DNA from: Utricularia gibba
Lineage: Eukaryota; Plantae; Magnoliophyta
NCBI GenBank assembly: GCA_002189035.1
Contig: NEEC01000017.1
Location: 2,356,001 to 2,420,000 of the forward strand
Reading direction: 5' to 3'
Length of the DNA: 64,000 nt
This document shows positions 49,747 through 61,249 of this stretch, piece by piece (the first letter of the stretch is position 1; each line of letters begins with the position of its first letter). Both the position numbers and the translations under genes were made by a program. The notes under the pieces were generated by a model. That model worked only from the letters and a program-made list of their open reading frames with translations. It was not told where the DNA came from and ran no database searches.

Positions 49747-52210
49747 CTATCCATTGTTGGGATTTCTATTGACAGCATCATGTGCTTGCCACGAAGGTTG
49801 ATTGCCACTGGTTGAAATGGGCATGATCGAAGCCTTTTGGTACCTTAGCTTCTCAATTTCCCTTTCCAGATACTCAAGAGTTGTATCAGTCACATGATTG
49901 GGTGCACATCCAGCATCCAGCATCATCTTCAAGAACTTGTTAGCCTCCTTGAGCTTACCCGCTTTGCTGTGAACTTCAATCAGAGTATTGTAAGTCACTA
50001 CATCAGGATTTGTCCCACTGCTCCTCATTTGCTGAAAAAGCCTACCTACATCTTCGAGTCGGCCTGCCTTTCCAAGACAATGGATCAATGTGTTATACAT
50101 AACTATATCAAGGAAACCGCCATCCTTTTGTAACTTGTCGAGGACAGAACTTGCAAGATCTGCCCTCCCTATCTTTCCAAGTCCCTGTATGATCAAATTG
50201 TAGGTAGCTATGTCTGCAGGATAGGTGTTCTCACCCATGGTTTGAAGAACACCCCACACCTCCTTGAAGTACCCTTTCTTTATGAATGAACTCATCATTG
50301 AATTGTAGGTGTAACTTACAGGAGTCACTCCCATTTTGCTGAAAACCTCAAAGAGCTTGCAAGCTAAGCTCAACTTCCCCTTGGCCAAGAAAATAGATAG
50401 AAATGTGTTCACCATGTCGATGTCGAAAAACTGTTCGCCTTTCGACATGACCCTGATTCCTCGAGAGCTCTCAAAAAATTGGGAAGAAGAAGCATAGTCT
50501 TGGCCAGATGACATCTCTCTGGCCAATTGATCCATGTATGGAGAAGATGACCACTCATCCCATCCTGACCATTGCCATCTTCACCGACGCTGCTATCATC
50601 TGGTCGGGTGTCTATGGAATTGGTGAGTTCCAAGACTTTGGTAACATCAGGTACCGGTGGAAACATGGGAGTAAAATCTTTATCTTTGCTCTGTGAACTC
50701 TTCAGTGCACTTTCCATCTTAGATTTCCAGTTGAAAACATTTGGAACCAAATTCCCATCTCTGATATGCTTCATTAGCCTCTCTGTCCAGTCCCACTTTC
50801 CCGTCCTGTGTAAAGCTATCAACAATGAAGTTACAGTAACCAAATCAACCACAAAACCTCGAGCCTCCATCTCTTCCACCAACTGCAATGCTTCTTCGAG
50901 CCGATCCTCACGACAAAGGTTCAGAATGACGATACTGAAACTGATCCCATCAATGAAATCATTGCCCTTCCGTTTAAGATCAGTAAAAAGACAATAGGCA
51001 GCTTCAGGTCTCCCATTTCTGTACAGTCCATTCAAAAGTATGTTATATGTTGAGCATGAAGACCTTACTCCATTTTCGACCATCGTCTCGAAAAAACTGC
51101 AGGCCTCCGTCAGCTTCCTTGACTTGAACAAACCATCTAGGAGAGAATTATATGCTACAGTTTCTGTTTCTACACCATTATAATGCATCTCCCTGAAAAT
51201 CTTCATTGCATCGTTGATCCTATAGGATTTAGAACAGCCCTGAATCAGTATTCTGTATGTGAATGAATCAGGCTCATGACCTGATGAATCTTTCAGCTCC
51301 TTCCACACGACAAGGGCATCGTTCACCTTCCCGAGCAAGCAAAGCACTTGGATCAAGCTGTTGTATGTACACAGATCAGGATAAACTGAACCTCCCTTGT
51401 CTTTCATCTCCTTAAACAGACACAGAGAAGTCTTCAGGTCACCCCATGATCCAAATGCATGAATGCAAATGTTGTAACCCCATTTATCTGATGGATAAAG
51501 CTTCGTCTCCCGCAGCCTCTGAAAAACATCCCTGAACTCATCCTTCAATCCCCCTTCTTCAGGCCAGCAAGTAACTCATTACATGCAAAAGCGTCAGGAA
51601 TGGAACAAGTATCAAGGAGCTTGTAGAAAACCGACAAAGCTATGGAAATCTGATTCTTCCTAACAAGAGCTACAACAACAGGGCAATACACATCCGGGCT
51701 CAAACATGTGTTCATCAATTCTTTCTCAGCGTAATCCAAAACTTGTAGAGCAAACTCAAATTTTTGTGCCTTGATCAACCCACTGAGAATCAGCTTCAAG
51801 GTACCCGAATCAAGCGTCAGCCCATCACGTTTCATCATGGAAAGAAGCTCGACAACGTGGTGGTTGTACCGGTGAGGGAAGAAGAAGATTGCTTTCAGCA
51901 TCTGCGAATAGGTCGTGACAGAATGCTTGTAACCGGGAAGCGAAGATAGCCATTTGAAAAAAGCCAACTTCCTGGACACACCAACAGAACCCCGGCGAAT
52001 CACTTGGAGAACGACGTCTTCAGTGAAGGTAATGGAACCCACATCCTTCGACAGAGAATTTAATCCCCCATTCTCCGATAAAGCCTTGGTTATGGAGGCA
52101 ACTACTAGAACGTCACAAAGCTGGGCGGTCGCCGCCTTCGCAGACACCGTGGAACAGAATCTAGGGCAGAAGCGCAGGGGCGAGCCAAGACGATACCCAA
52201 GCATACGCAT
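49747..52210 (-). CDS. P-class pentatricopeptide-repeat protein (At4g01570-like), intronless, with two apparent -1 frameshifts
   Basis: Tandem PPR motifs (e.g. PDLCTYNSLIQVLC, DIATYNLIIQGLGKIGR, PDVVTYNTLIEV) are spread over three consecutive ORFs. These join if one base is added at C-runs 51550-51554 and 50559-50561. Confidence 0.9.
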
Positions 52211-52677: not shown

Positions 52678-55600
52678 TCAGTGCCGGACCCGGGGGTTGG
52701 CGTTGCGGATGGTGACGCCGTGCAGGAACTTCGTGAACCCGAGAAAACTCAGGTGACCATCGGAGGGCCTGATCCAGTCCTTGAGCTGGGAGTAAGCTGA
52801 GGCACCTAAATTGAGTTCCTGAGATGGGATTTTTGGATGTGAGAGAGGAAAAAAAAAAGGCAGTGATATCAGTTCCTTGGAGCTAAGTAGACCTGTGCCA
52901 GTTCCTTGACGGAGATGATGCGGTTGCCTTCTCGCTCGAAGGCCTGAAATGCAGCACTCGCGATCTCCTCCCATCTTTCAAGTGCCTCGAGCTGGTGAGG
53001 GCTGGTGGATGCAGCGCAGAACTCTTCCCAGTCCATGATTTTATGAGACAGTGGCTCCATCTGCGTTTTTCAAGACCAAAGATGAAGATTTCTCAGTAAC
53101 TAGTGCTAAGGGAATCAACCAACAACCTTTTCCTAGATCTTACTTAACGTACAGATCATGCAAAGCTATCCTCAAAAGATTTTACCCCGAGAAAAAATAA
53201 AGGAACTGATTCTTTGCCATCCTCGACAGACAAAAGTAACAAAGTGATCATCAAAAGAAAAAGCCATTACCATGTTCAGAATATCAGCGACCCTCGATTC
53301 CTTCATGGCATCTGTTGCGTTTCTCACAAGGCCCTTGAAATCAAAACAAGAGTTGCTGGTCAGGGAGCTGCTGAAAGAAACAAAGAGTGGAGATAAAAAG
53401 ACTGCACACCATCCGAAAATTGTCGAGGGAGACATGCCCATCTATTGGTTCTAAAAGCTCAAACTGGGCCCGGAGATAAAGTAGCTCCTCTTCAGTCAAG
53501 GCTTTTGAGAGTGCCTGCACGACAGGCACACATTCCTTAAAGAACAGTTCAACAACAGGAAAGGTAAAAGGTTGCAGTAGTAGACAAAGAGGAATGATGG
53601 TCTTATGATAGAATGCCGCATCACGAATTGGGAACATATATGTGCCTTATGAAGGATAAAACTTGAACATGATATTGGTGGTCGTTCAGAGCACTTACTT
53701 TTAGAGCATCACGCCTCAAGGGTGAGGCTCGAATATAGGATTTCACTAGTCTGTATATCATGATATCCAAAGGAATACTGCAGTTTAAATCCCTTAACCA
53801 TGGATGGGCTGAAGATCACAGAGATAAGTCAGCATTATCACCCTATATGAGTACTTTTACAAAAGAAAAACTCACTCAATGCTTGTGCTGCAGTCATTCT
53901 TTTCCTGTGGTCCCTATTGAGAAGCCTTTTAACAAAGTCCTTGGCTTGTGGTGATACTGAGGGCCATGGTGCATCGTGAAAGTTGGGATCAGCTCTGAGG
54001 ACAGAACGGAAAATCCCAGATTCTGTGCGAGCCCAAAAAGGCCTGCTTCCACATAATAAGATGTATGTTATCACACCAATGCTCCAGATATCTGCTTCAG
54101 TGCTGTATGATCTGTGAAGTACTTCAGGTGCCACATAATATGCACTGCCGACGATATCATTCAGACGCTCATCTGCAATTATGGATCAACAGATCTGTGT
54201 TATCCACAAAGATCATCGAAAAGGGCAAAGAAAAAGCCATGGTTACAGTGCAATGGCAGTTCCAATGAGCTAGGAGAATTTCTGTTTATATACTCAAATG
54301 AAAAGGATTGAGATGCACCTGGACGAATAAAATCAGATAGACCGAAATCTATGACCTTCATGGGAGCATCTTCATCTTTCGTTGCAAACAGAAAATTCTG
54401 CAAGAAATACAGAAAAAAGAAATCCTAAAGGGCCGGAAGCTACCAATCAACATTACTCTACATTATTGAGTCATTAGGAACCATTCACTCAGTATGAAAT
54501 CCTTTTTACCTCGGGTTTCAGGTCCCGGTGGACAACACCTTGTAAATGACAAAAGGCAACAACACTCAGCATCTGTGCAACTATAATTTTGGCGTCCTCT
54601 TCTGTGTACCTTCCACCTCTGCACCAGAGATGCAGTGACAAATCAAGAGAAACCATAGAGTGGTTTTCGCATATCCAGTGTGATTACCTCGACAAAATTC
54701 TATCCAGCAGTTCACCTCCTTCACACAATCTATCAAAAAGAAAACTTAATTAAACGCTTGTCAATGACAAATGTACTCTTAGTAAGAAGCGTAAAAGGAA
54801 AGAACTTACTCCATTACTACATAGACATTATTTGCATCTTCAAATGCATCATAAAACTTTATCAAGTTAATATGTCCAGATAAAGCCTTCAAAATCTTGA
54901 CCTCCCTTCTAACATCCTCAATAGCTATTGCTGTCGTCATCTGTACAAGAAATGGGAAATGGCAAAGGTCATTCACCCCCTCAAACACATAAAAATGCAG
55001 CTCAGTGGGTTGCATCGAAGTAGGAGAACTATTAAGAGAACGATTTGGATTAAGCTAGGCAGCTCTGGACAACCATTGAACTTCCTAAAATAAAAATGCT
55101 ACTTGAAGTTCCAATCACGGAAGGGGCAGCACTTGTCAGCAAGTGGTGGAGCAACGAAGATCCGGGAAGTCTCAACCCGCGAAGATGAATGGCGCGCGAC
55201 CTCTGTTCCTCCCATGAGAAGCAACCCTCAATTAGATTGGGAAAAAGGCCTTATCATACTTGGGCCTCAACATTCCAAACTACTGGCCCAAGAAGAAGCA
55301 TCTGAAGCCCAGTCCATGAAAGAAGTCCTAGTAAATTCTGGCTGCTACACAGTAGATGAACAAGAGGACTAATCTACAGACTAAAGGCAACGGTCATATT
55401 TTAGGCCTGATATGATCCAACGGGCAACTCTCCTCATCTATATAAATCCCTGTTTGCTTTATGAAAAAAAAAAAAAGTTCTTTTCGATCCAAAAACAATA
55501 GTCAATATCCACAAACTTCAACATTCTCTCAACGTTCAACCAAGTCTCCAACAAAATCAAGCAGCCAAAAATACTTTTATGGTGAACCCGACGTGAAGAT

Positions 55601-58600
55601 ACTTCACCGACTCCCATCTCCTCTTATCATTGCAGTCTCTCAGAATGGCAGCCCTCCAACAAGCTCCTCCAATCTTCACTGGTCAGCGCTACGCTTCTTG
55701 GGCAGTACGAATGGAAAGTTACCTGCAAATGAACGACTTATGGTCTGTGGTGGATCCTGTACGTCCAGACTCCTCTGAAATAGCCACAGCAGAAAGTCTC
55801 AAACTCACAGATGCTCAAGTAAAGAAAGCTAAGTATGCTCTGGATCAAGCCTTATCTGAAGAAGTGTTCAACCGTGTTATGCTACTGAAAAGTCCCAAAG
55901 ACATCTGGAAAAAATTGGAGGAATTCTACGGAGAGGATACGGAAGCCCGTGAGAGCCGCATTCAACGTCAATGGGAGCTCTTTGACAACCTGAAATTCTT
56001 ACCAGGTATGAGTATCTCTCATTTTTCAGAAACGCTAATCAAAATTGTCACTGAGTTACAGACCTTGGAGAGCCCTTGGAAGACAGAAGAATTAAATCAA
56101 AAATACTCAGTTCCCTACCGCGGTCCTTTGCCCCTGTAGTCACTACTTTGCGGGTCACAGGCATTCACTCCATATCCTCCAGAAAACTACTAGAAAGACT
56201 CAGTGAATCCGAAGTTGAAGTCGGACTTGGTGAAGGCCAGGAACTTGCCTTCAAGGCAACAGAAAATCAGAAAGGCTATGGTTCTCAATCATCAAATGAA
56301 CCGGTGATCTTTCAAGCAAAAATTGAGAAACCAAGTACTGGAGATTCATGCCCATTCTGCAAGCGAAAAGGCCATTCACCAACACAATGTTTCTGGAGCC
56401 CTGACGCCAAATGCCTGTACTGTTCTCTCCAAGGTCATGTGGACAAAGTGTGTCCCCTGAAAAAATACCATCAGATTGGAGGAAAGGCTGCAGATCCTAA
56501 GGACAAACTTACTAGCGCTATGAATGATGTAAATCTCGCAGCTGAAATGAATAAGAAGAAGATTGATATTTACTCTCTGCGCCGCAAAACTCTAATCACA
56601 TCATTTGTGGATCTAAGGAAACAAGACATCTGGTTTATCGATAGCGGATGCAGTCATCATATAACCAACGACAAGAGTCTATTCACAACCTTCATCGAGC
56701 TAACTGGGAAAGTAATCGAAATTGCTGATGGAAATCACTTACAGGTCATCGGTCAAGGAACAGTTTGCCTTGAAACTGTCCAGAAATTAATCAAGATCAC
56801 AGACGTGTATCTGGTGCCCCAGGCCTACCACAATCTACTAAGCACTGGCCAGCTGGTTGAAAAGGGGATGAAAGTTCATCTGGAAAGTAATGAGTGCAAA
56901 ATATTAGATGAAGAAGATAATATACTCCTTACGGTTGCTATGACTGATAGGGTCTTTCCACTGCTTCCGAATGCTACATCCATCGATTACAACATTTGCC
57001 TCAAGTCCCTAGAATCATCTGAGATTTGGCACCAACGGTTAGGTCACCATCACTATGCCTCCCTTATATCCATGAAGAAGAGAAACCTGGCAGAGGGGAT
57101 TCCTAATATAATTCCTGAGGGAGAACACTGCAGAATATGCTTTCAAGGGAAGATGAGCCGAACACCACTCCCTAAGTCCAGCATTCATTCTCAGAAAAAA
57201 TTGGAAGTTGTTACCAGTGACGTCTGTGGGCCCATGGCCTCTCCTACTCGAGCCGGCAACAAATATTACGTGATCTTTATTGACGAATATTCAAAGTATA
57301 CCTGGATCTATCTCCTGAAGCATAAATCAGAGGTTTTGCACCACTTCCAAGTCTTCAAGGTCCTTGCAGAAACTCAAAGCAATAGTAAGATTCTAACACT
57401 CCGGTCAGACAACGGAGGTGAGTACAAATCAACTGAACTGAGACACATTTGTGAGACAAATGGTATTACTCACCAGTTTACAACGCCATATACGCCAGAG
57501 CAGAACGGCATATGTGAACGAAAGAACAGGACAATAGTCAATATGGCTCGGTGTCTACTCTATCAAAAACACTTACCTCTAGAATTCTGGGGCGAAGCAG
57601 TCAACACAGCCGTGTATCTGTTGAACCGCCTGCCAACCAAAGGAAATAAAGACTGTAAAACTCCTTATGAGCTATGGTACAACAAAATTCCAAGCCTAGA
57701 TCACATGAAGGTATTTGGATCACCCTGCTATATATACATTCCAAAGGAGAAGAGATCAAAATGGGACAAAAGATCTGATGAAGGAATTTTCCTGGGATAT
57801 AGCAATACAAGTAAAGCCTACAGGGTACTGAATCTAAGAACAAATGAGGTGGAACTCAGTCGTGATGTAACAGTAGACGAGACTAGAATTTACAACTGGA
57901 GTTCCTCGACAACACATGACAAAAATCATTCTTATTCAGAAAATATATGGAATTTATTCCCTCAACAAGGACATGATGCAACAACCGAACCCCTCAGCAT
58001 CCACCCAGCGAGGAACAGTCCTAGTCAAGACTCTATTCAACAAGAAATGACAGCCTCAGGAACAAATATGTTAAGGGTCCAAGCAACCCTAGAAGATCAA
58101 ATCACAAACTCAAATGATCGAGCCTCAAACTCAACAGATTTAAGAGGACACTCGGTGTCAACGACAGACATCCTAGAAGTCTCTAATAGCGAAAATTTGC
58201 CACCACCTAGTCCTGATGTTCCGAGAACAATTGAGCCCGAAAGCCCCTGTACAACAGAAGATCCTGTTAATACCCAACAGTTTCCAGAAGGCTCCTTGGC
58301 CACTACTATCGAAGACATGAGATATGAGGATGCAGACTCAGAGCACATACCTGAACAAACTCTAGAATGTCATGAAACCCTCATCAACAGCATCAGAAAT
58401 CCAAAGGAAATCACTGAGCTATCATCAACCGATACATCAGAAGAAGAAAACTCATCAGGAGAAGATGAAGAAACTCAAAACCGAGGACCCAACCTAGCAG
58501 CAAGAAATCCTATACTCATTCCCTCACCTCAAAGGCAAAGTTACCTGGAAGATTACGGACAAGAAGGGGTTCCTTACACCCCACATCATCTATGTATGGA

Positions 58601-61249
58601 TCTGAAACAAAATGAAGACAGCTCACCTGTGCGAGGATATGCACCAATCAACGATATCTATGATAGGGCATTGAGCACCTATGAACCAGCAAGCGTTCAG
58701 GAAGCTCTCGCTGACCCAGATTGGAAGAAATCCATAGACGAAGAATTCAACTCCATCCAGAAACACGGCGTTTGGACAGCAGTGCCTAAGCCGAAGCAGA
58801 AAAAACCTCTGGACCTAAAATTCATATTCCGTCCCAAGTTAAATCCTGATGGCACTCTGAACAAAAGAAAATCCAGACTGGTGGTAAAGGGATATTTACA
58901 GAAAGAAGGGATTGATTACCTGGAAACCTTCGCTCCGGTGGCAAGATTAGACACCATTAAGCTGATTATTGCACTTGCGGCCTGCAACAAGTGGTATTTA
59001 CATCATCTGGACATAAAAACGGCCTTTCTGCATGGAGAGTTAAGCGAAGACATATATGTGAACCCCCCTCCAGGTTTCATCATCCGAGATAATCCAGAAT
59101 ATGTACTGAAATTAAATAAAGCTTTATACGGACTCAAGCAGGCCCCAAAGAATGGTATACTACCATTGACACTTTCTTTCTAGAGCTGGGATATACAAGA
59201 AGTCAAAATGATACTACATTATACATATCTGAGGATATCCAAGGAAAAGTTATTGTCTCCTTATACGTAGACGACATTCTAATCACAGGCAGCAGTGAAG
59301 AACGAATTTCTGAATTACAGAAGCTATTGCAGCAAAGATTTGAACTCACCAATCTGGGACATGCACGTTATTTCCTAGGAATGGAGATCATTCAACATAA
59401 AGACTTCATATTTTTGAACCAACGTAGATATACAGAGGAACTACTCAAAAAATACAGCATGGAATCATCAAAAGTATCTACTACTCCTTTCTCACCAGAA
59501 GTTAGAAAGAAATTATCTGACCTTAATTCTCATCCAGTTGACTCTCATAACTACCAGAAACTCATTGGCGCTCTGATGTATTTAACTGCTACTAGACCGG
59601 ATATAACCTTCGCCGTATCATTTCTGGCCAGATTCATGCATCAGCCACACAACACACACCTGGAAATAGCAACACGTATCCTGAAATATTTGAAGGCCAC
59701 AACTTCCTTTGGTTTATATTACAAGAAAGGTACTAACCCTATTTTGCAGGGATTTGTTGATTCAGACTTTGCTGGCGACGAACAAGATTGTAAATCTACC
59801 ACAGGCTATCTATTCAACTTAGGATCAGCGGTATTTTCATGGAACAGCAAGAAACAAGCCGTCACTGCACAATCATCGGCAGAAGCCGAATACATCGCAG
59901 GAGCTGCTGCTGCCAACCATGCGCAATGGTTGGTGAAATTATGCGATGACCTGAAAATTCAAATTACAAGACCGATAATACTCAAGATAGATAACAAATC
60001 TGCCATTAGCATCGCAAAAAATCCTGTGATGTTCGGTCGGACCAAGCACATCAAGCTTAAATACCATATACTCAGAGATTATGTGAAGGAAGGACTGATT
60101 AAACTTGAGTACTTACCATCGGATGAGCAACCTGCAGATATTCTCACCAAATGCTTATTCCCAAGGAATTTCAACAGAATCAGAGAAATGCTGGGAATTC
60201 GGAGAAATCCTCTTGTGACAACAGCCGGATCTTCATTACTCCCTCAGGGAGGAATGTCAGCAAGTGGTGGAGCAACGAAGATCCGGGAAGTCTCAACCCG
60301 CGAAGATGAATGGCGCGCGACCTCTGTTCCTCCCATGAGAAGCAACCCTCAATTAGATTGGGAAAAAGGCCTTATCATACTTGGGCCTCAACATTCCAAA
60401 CTACTGGCCCAAGAAGAAGCATCTGAAGCCCAGTCCATGAAAGAAGTCCTAGTAAATTCTGGCTGCTACACAGTAGATGAACAAGAGGACTAATCTACAG
60501 ACTAAAGGCAACGGTCATATTTTAGGCCTGATATGATCCAACGGGCAACTCTCCTCATCTATATAAATCCCTGTTTGCTTTATGAAAAAAAAAAAAAAGT
60601 TCTTTTCGATCCAAAAACAATAGTCAATATCCACAAACTTCAACATTCTCTCAACGTTCAACCAAGTCTCCAACAAAATCAAGCAGCCAAAAATACTTTT
60701 AGCACTTGCCTTAGCTTTTGAAATGATCTTCACGGCCACTTGCTGATTCTTGAGCTCCCCCTTTTTGACTTTGGCCCAACATGTATGACCAAAATGCCCA
60801 CGACCCACTTCTTTCCCAAGCTCGTACTTCGCCCCTATGTTCTTTGAATATCCGAAGCTCTTATCGAGCTGTTGCTCAATTCCATCTGCACGGCCGGTGC
60901 CTGTTGTCTCCTCAGGTATAGGAATAGTAGGGTGTGCCGATTGCCGCCGTCTCAAAAGCGCCGACATAATGGGTTTCGCCGGGGATGGAGGAGGCAAGGG
61001 CCATCGAAATTTTCTAGCCGGAGTCCCCGAAGGCGATGGCGACGGTGCAATACCACTGGGGTAGGGGCTCTGGAATGGACTTCCTGTGATGTATTGAGGC
61101 GGAGTTCGAGCTGCCCCATTGACTGAAGTCGACGGCGTGTGCGATCCCGGTGAGGCGGCCTGACGCCGGCGGGTGTCGGGATCCGCAGAGGAGGTGAACT
61201 CGTTATTCTCTAGAGAAGCCGCAACGTTCTTGCTACAACAATGCCCCAT
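52678..61249 (-). CDS. CRK: CDPK-related kinase (CRK4/6-like), 11 exons; intron 1 holds the retrotransposon
   Basis: MGHCCS acylation motif, [65 protein letters not shown] and degenerate EF-hand C-terminus. Confidence 0.95.
55134..55579 (+). repeat. 5' LTR (446 bp), TG...TA
   Basis: Matches the 3' LTR except A13 versus A14; TATA box TATATAAA at ~55439. Confidence 0.97.
55580..55597 (+). other. Primer-binding site complementary to the 3' 18 nt of cytosolic tRNA-Trp
   Basis: TGGTGAACCCGACGTGAA is the reverse complement of TTCACGTCGGGTTCACCA, the plant tRNA-Trp(CCA) 3' end as recalled. Confidence 0.85.
55639..60493 (+). CDS. Gag-Pol polyprotein of the Copia element, split by two apparent -1 frameshifts (~56067, ~59150)
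   Basis: Gag [16 protein letters not shown]; two CCHC knuckles; protease [10 protein letters not shown]; integrase WHQRLGH...[29 protein letters not shown]; [24 protein letters not shown]; RNase [30 protein letters not shown]. The start codon is approximate. Confidence 0.95.
60246..60254 (+). other. Polypurine tract AGGGAGGAA
   Basis: Purine run immediately before the TG of the 3' LTR. Confidence 0.85.
60255..60701 (+). repeat. 3' LTR (447 bp), TG...TA
   Basis: Follows the PPT; followed directly by TSD GCACT. Confidence 0.97.

Follow-up and report, generated by a model that had tools for sequence, protein, structure and literature searches.

Initiator tRNA-Met is the usual primer of plant Ty1/copia retrotransposons. 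In the accessible part of the REXdb survey, which covers 5,410 plant copia elements, tRNA-Met is dominant in all lineages using a whole tRNA but one, the gymnosperm group Gymco-III (tRNA-Leu in 2/3 elements), and tRNA-Trp is listed only for the Ty3/gypsy groups TatI and Phygy (PMC6317226). This part of the survey agrees with the sequence-only reading of the locus described below, which had taken initiator tRNA-Met as the common copia primer. Primer changes within Ty1/copia are exemplified by Gymco-III and also by Bianca (half tRNA-Ile), TAR (self-priming) and the Puccinia Copia families (anticodon loops of tRNA-Tyr, Ile and Asp); tRNA-Trp is not among the primers of these elements, for which a full 18-nt primer binding site (PBS) for a tRNA 3' end has not been described either.

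The use of tRNA-Trp is known outside copia, Rous sarcoma virus (RSV) being primed by it. RSV and the avian sarcoma-leukosis viruses resemble the element reported here both in the primer and in the 18 contiguous nucleotides that reach into the T arm; however, RSV belongs to an unrelated RT lineage (Retroviridae), has an animal host, and possesses an additional pairing of U5 with the T arm, which was not found in our element. Between animals and plants, the tRNA-Trp 3' end differs in two bases. Among LTR retrotransposons, the gypsy groups TatI and Phygy and the animal CsRn1/Boudicca-like elements also carry a PBS for the tRNA-Trp 3' end, but these groups have the RT-RH-INT order and mostly a 4-bp TSD, whereas the present element combines RVT_2 and the copia domain order with a 5-bp TSD. 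The PBS is typically 18 nt long in retroviruses and only 10 nt in Ty1 (PMC3592414). Since primer changes within copia and tRNA-Trp priming in other retroelements are already known, the mechanism considered here is not new. A text search of the literature for tRNA-Trp together with copia returned gypsy cases only, and a search for the PBS string returned only unrelated matches concerning mouse metabolism; rare tRNA-Trp copia elements may already be on record in the REXdb per-element data or in Repbase.

The window, i.e., the whole analysed stretch of 64,000 nt from Utricularia gibba, contains a complete Ty1/copia LTR retrotransposon at 55134-60701 (Table 1). We consider it likely that this element represents a young multi-copy eudicot copia family whose minus strand is primed by cytosolic tRNA-Trp(CCA) after a switch from initiator tRNA-Met.

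Table 1. Features of the element and of its insertion site; positions are those of the window
Feature	Position	Strand	Remark
Left TSD copy, GCACT, 5 bp	55129..55133	+	repeated at 60702-60706
5' LTR, 446 bp, ends TG...TA	55134..55579	+	direct repeat with 60255-60701
TATA box in the 5' LTR	55439-55446	+	
PBS, 18 nt	55580..55597	+	complements the cytosolic tRNA-Trp(CCA) 3' end including CCA
Small hairpin, 6-bp stem and 3-nt loop	55593..55607	+	overlaps the 3' end of the PBS
gag, first ATG to the end of the frame	55645..56136	+	Pfam Retrotran_gag_2 and DUF4219
pol piece 1, second frame	56055..59180	+	protease-like beta-barrel, integrase, N-terminal half of RT
pol piece 2, third frame	59120..60493	+	remaining RT (YVDD) and RNase H region; C-terminal part of Pfam RVT_2
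Polypurine tract, AGGGAGGAA	60246..60254	+	adjoins the 3' LTR
3' LTR, 447 bp	60255..60701	+	direct repeat with the 5' LTR
Right TSD copy, GCACT	60702..60706	+	

The assignment to Ty1/copia is clear: the direct LTRs, the 5-bp TSD, the PBS, the polypurine tract and RVT_2 are all present, and the Pfam matches follow the copia order of gag, protease-like barrel, integrase and RVT_2. The first pol piece matches Pol_BBD, gag_pre-integrs, rve, SH3_retrovirus and RVT_2, while the RNase H region has no Pfam match of its own. The region 55580-55625, in which the hairpin lies, has a predicted fold energy of -8.0 kcal/mol. Two peculiarities of the termini can be mentioned. Both LTRs end in TG...TA instead of the usual TG...CA, with the PBS adjoining without a spacer; and the final pol frame (ORF 59327-60493) runs on without a stop across the polypurine tract and 79 codons into U3 of the 3' LTR (60255-60493).

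The coding region is spread over three frames, which change within 56055-56136 and within 59120-59180; the element at 55134-60701 thus lacks the uninterrupted gag-pol frame of an autonomous copy and, given the two breaks, cannot itself supply all proteins. Contigs from four public runs were compared with the element. In those that represent other copies we observed one-letter length differences near both frame breaks, which makes both breaks appear specific to this copy or its assembly. The runs X6 and X8 are guessed to be RNA; in their contigs, 2 other bases stand in place of 75 at the gag-pol junction (55991-56067), and this deletion variant of the family is the form present in the RNA-like runs.

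The PBS, TGGTGAACCCGACGTGAA, occupies 55580-55597 and directly follows the last base of the 5' LTR. Even when 3 mismatches were permitted, the window gave no other match to this sequence, the chance expectation being 0.02. The usual copia PBS, TGGTATCAGAGC, was not found in the 64-kb window at up to 1 mismatch, and no relic of an initiator tRNA-Met PBS was found in the leader of the element at up to 3 mismatches; the element therefore has no PBS of the initiator tRNA-Met type (TGGTATCAGAGC type). The claim of the sequence-only reading that a non-standard site directly follows the 5' LTR is borne out by the position of TGGTGAACCCGACGTGAA and the absence of TGGTATCAGAGC. A search for tRNA genes in the window found none.

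The tRNA 3' end was looked up by scanning public metagenome contigs with the 20-mer TTCGATTCACGTCGGGTTCA, which returned at least 120 loci. ARAGORN placed a tRNA-Trp(CCA) ending at the 20-mer match in all 40 loci scanned, and one identical 72-nt gene (e.g., L044:2038-2109) holds 116 of 124 among the matches listed. The plant tRNA-Trp(CCA) 3' end given in the sequence-only reading is thereby confirmed. Once CCA is added, the PBS complements exactly the final 18 nt of this tRNA (18/18 bases), so that it fits tRNA-Trp and not initiator tRNA-Met, as had been proposed; the pairing ends at nucleotide 19, where A58 of the T-loop faces a non-pairing base of the element, and the earlier statement on the length of the match and on its break holds against the metagenome tRNA-Trp genes. 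From conservation across plants, the host tRNA-Trp(CCA) is predicted to end in TTCACGTCGGGTTCA. A long core of the tRNA-Trp gene is identical between plants and humans. The break at nucleotide 19 would reflect the stop of RT at m1A58, with which the arithmetic agrees, and priming by tRNA-Trp in the particles is predicted from the complementarity. Additional pairing of tRNA-Trp with U5 or the leader amounts to one 7-mer, i.e., the chance level. Separately, a 15-mer of the tRNA end gave 31 matches in viral contigs; they are attributed to chance, since not one of them is located in a tRNA or follows a TGG.

The closest relatives of the element are rather distant. Best identities to the pol piece are 38-46%, and neither the word-index search nor the exhaustive HMMER search of 1.84 billion representatives yielded a relative above 46%; viral contigs searched with the same piece contained no related loci. 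Both trees (FastTree with 191 rows, IQ-TREE with 58 rows) gave the element a long branch of 0.86-0.96, the median being 0.42-0.55. The branch is nested in a clade with good support (SH-like 97; SH-aLRT 98-99), and every named member of that clade is an angiosperm. IQ-TREE further places the element as sister, with an SH-aLRT of 91, to a Malvales-rich group with many Gossypium, Hibiscus and Shorea members.

The DNA of eight relatives was fetched and the PBS was read in seven of them, Centaurea P0164 being left out as a nested element. In the sister clade the sites are TGGTATTCAGAGCC in Gossypium anomalum, TGGTATCAGAGCA in both the ENA contig P0001 and Shorea, and TGGCATCAGAGCA in Hibiscus; the other three are TGGTATCAGAGC in Rosa, TGGTATCAGAGCAGG in Mikania and TGGTATCAGA in P0255. 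Each of these seven sites belongs to the initiator tRNA-Met type and has 10-13 contiguous bases. These tRNA-Met-primed angiosperm elements (about 4.7-6.5 kb; Gossypium, Hibiscus, Shorea, Rosa, Mikania) share with ours the clade (SH-aLRT 98-99), the domain order and Pfam families, the 5-bp TSD, the short LTRs, a polypurine tract ending in GGAGGA-like purines, and a PBS located 0-3 nt past the LTR; in size and LTR length they resemble the Ale/Ivana-type elements of REXdb. They differ from it in the site itself (10-13 bases of the TGGTATCAGAGC type against an 18-nt tRNA-Trp complement), in protein sequence (38-46% identity) and in the LTR end, which in our element is TA and not CA. The observations support the tRNA-Trp PBS as a derived state; initiator tRNA-Met being the primer of its nearest relatives, the switch took place along the long branch that leads to the family. 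The suggestion that the family changed its primer tRNA is thus upheld by all seven relatives, and also by the REXdb survey, where the accessible part has tRNA-Trp in gypsy only; that tRNA-Trp priming might be the norm of the clade, an objection that the sequence-only reading had itself raised, is not borne out by these relatives.

If the element is primed as we presume, the final 18 nt of tRNA-Trp (the acceptor stem, the 3' side of the T-stem, two T-loop bases and CCA) would anneal to 55580-55597 on the RNA, directly 3' of U5, and RT would extend the tRNA into U5 and R. The remaining cycle would proceed as in any LTR element, with the plus strand started from the polypurine tract at 60246-60254. 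As to the route of the switch, the most economical one would be a single event of priming by tRNA-Trp, with the copied 18 nt fixed in progeny DNA; a PBS that ends exactly opposite A58 suggests such an event. In retroviruses the copied primer nucleotides are fixed in progeny DNA. Ty1, the model of the superfamily, does not inherit the sequence of its primer, which weakens the mispriming route for copia. We therefore propose only tentatively, and regard as rather unlikely, that this family inherits its PBS from the primer, i.e., that plus-strand strong-stop DNA copies tRNA-Trp up to m1A58 and the copy is fixed in progeny. Should it be true, primer inheritance would explain the exact 18-nt PBS, the switch would have needed just a single mispriming event, and the family would be a natural and still active system in which to study how plant retrotransposons choose and switch their primers.

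A different origin of the site, to which we assign a low probability, is the gain of the PBS (possibly together with the leader) by template switching with a co-packaged tRNA-Trp-primed RNA, for example that of a Ty3/gypsy element; the present function would be unchanged, i.e., it would still be tRNA-Trp priming. It is favoured by the long branch of the family, by the atypical TG...TA ends of its LTRs, by the presence of tRNA-Trp PBSs in the plant gypsy groups TatI and Phygy (according to the accessible part of the survey), and by the gypsy targets that small RNAs named 'miR894', discussed below, have in Cryptomeria. However, neither a further tRNA-Trp PBS nor any donor-like sequence lies in the window, gag and pol are of the ordinary copia kind throughout, and direct copying of the tRNA would by itself produce a site that is exactly 18 nt long and ends opposite A58.

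Priming by the full tRNA-Trp, which we prefer, also needs to be considered in view of the fragments of this tRNA. According to the literature, the 18-mer ending in CCA that corresponds to the tRNA-Trp 3' end occurs widely in plants as a small RNA, for which 'miR894' is the usual annotation; such strings are reported in studies of conifer, grass, legume, Brassica, orchid and olive (Lamiales). In Cryptomeria, in the single table where both fragments are compared, the 18-nt tRNA-Trp fragment reaches 13,001 cpm against 854 cpm for the 18-nt initiator tRNA-Met fragment, i.e., it is about 15 times commoner (PMC5846777). The sequence-only reading had supposed that the new primer frees the family from silencing by tRNA 3' fragments; this benefit is not supported, because the matching tRNA-Trp fragment is itself an abundant small RNA in many plants. 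The other benefit that it proposed, less competition for initiator tRNA-Met, would be conceivable. We also noticed that 'miR894' reads extending past position 58 carry U where the tRNA-Trp gene has A, as expected from the misreading of m1A58.

It could be proposed that the free 18-nt fragment, and not the full tRNA, is the primer: it covers the PBS exactly, its length equals that of the PBS, in Cryptomeria no other form of the small RNA is as common (13,000 cpm), and it is reported from many plants. We find this very improbable, since the 18-nt class may be an artefact of small-RNA libraries caused by the RT stop at m1A58 (reads running past 58 have U for A), tRNA 3' fragments are reported to block priming and not to prime, and we know of no LTR element primed by a tRNA 3' fragment.

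The contigs of the public runs bear on the state of the family. In run X1 a single 4.7-kb contig spans 55550-60284 at a depth of 141.8, compared with 7-11 in the flanks, which suggests roughly 13-20 copies of the family; the LTR edges are joined to several different sequences, i.e., to other insertion sites. Contigs of X1 and X10 connect 55127 straight to 60701, the empty site, so some chromosomes lack the insertion. The sole difference between the 5' and 3' LTRs is one A in a poly-A run; as the LTRs are otherwise identical, the insertion is very young (at 1.3e-8 per site per year, about 0.09 Myr would be expected to bring less than 1 substitution). The PBS is unchanged across the contigs of all four runs, including an X10 variant that is 90-99% like the window, in which the next base after the PBS differs. 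A chance match or a mere relic, in a family that is mobilised otherwise (by self-priming or a half-tRNA) or is no longer mobile, is hardly credible: the two frame breaks in the copy at 55134-60701 would agree with it, but not the perfect 18-nt match at the first base after the LTR (0.02 expected in the window even with 3 mismatches), the retention of the PBS in the diverged variant, the polymorphic insertion with identical LTRs and about 13-20 copies, or the scan for tRNA-Trp complementarity outside the PBS, which gave nothing above chance.

Primer choice ranks among the best-conserved features of plant Ty1/copia elements, initiator tRNA-Met being the whole-tRNA primer in every lineage but one of the largest survey, and this family shows the rule to be breakable in a flowering plant. 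The family offers a tractable case for the questions of how primer switches arise, whether copia elements ever inherit the sequence of the primer, and whether tRNA fragments matching a PBS, here miR894, restrain such elements. In practical terms, the family may be missed or mis-scored by annotation pipelines in which copia elements are expected to have an initiator tRNA-Met PBS.

Some observations concern transcripts over the element and the neighbouring genes. On the minus strand of 55774-60115, at least 11 contig joints in X6 and X8 skip GT...AG introns of 78-540 nt, which points to multiply spliced antisense RNA over the element; a coding role of this RNA was rejected, as it contains no open stretch longer than 87 codons. 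The RNA-like contigs also link one and the same foreign sequence to 55103, a minus-strand GT donor, and to 60710, where the minus-strand donor GCAAGT is of the GC type and overlaps the right TSD copy; because the foreign sequence is shared, the host gene around the insertion seems to use these two positions as alternative donors. A weak protein-kinase match of the host gene is located on the minus strand at 60518-61249. A PPR-repeat gene (50409-52210, minus strand) is orthologous to At4g01570-like proteins; the search for its orthologues points to a host in Lamiales or the asterids, and its best matches, 60-66% identical, come from diverse eudicots.
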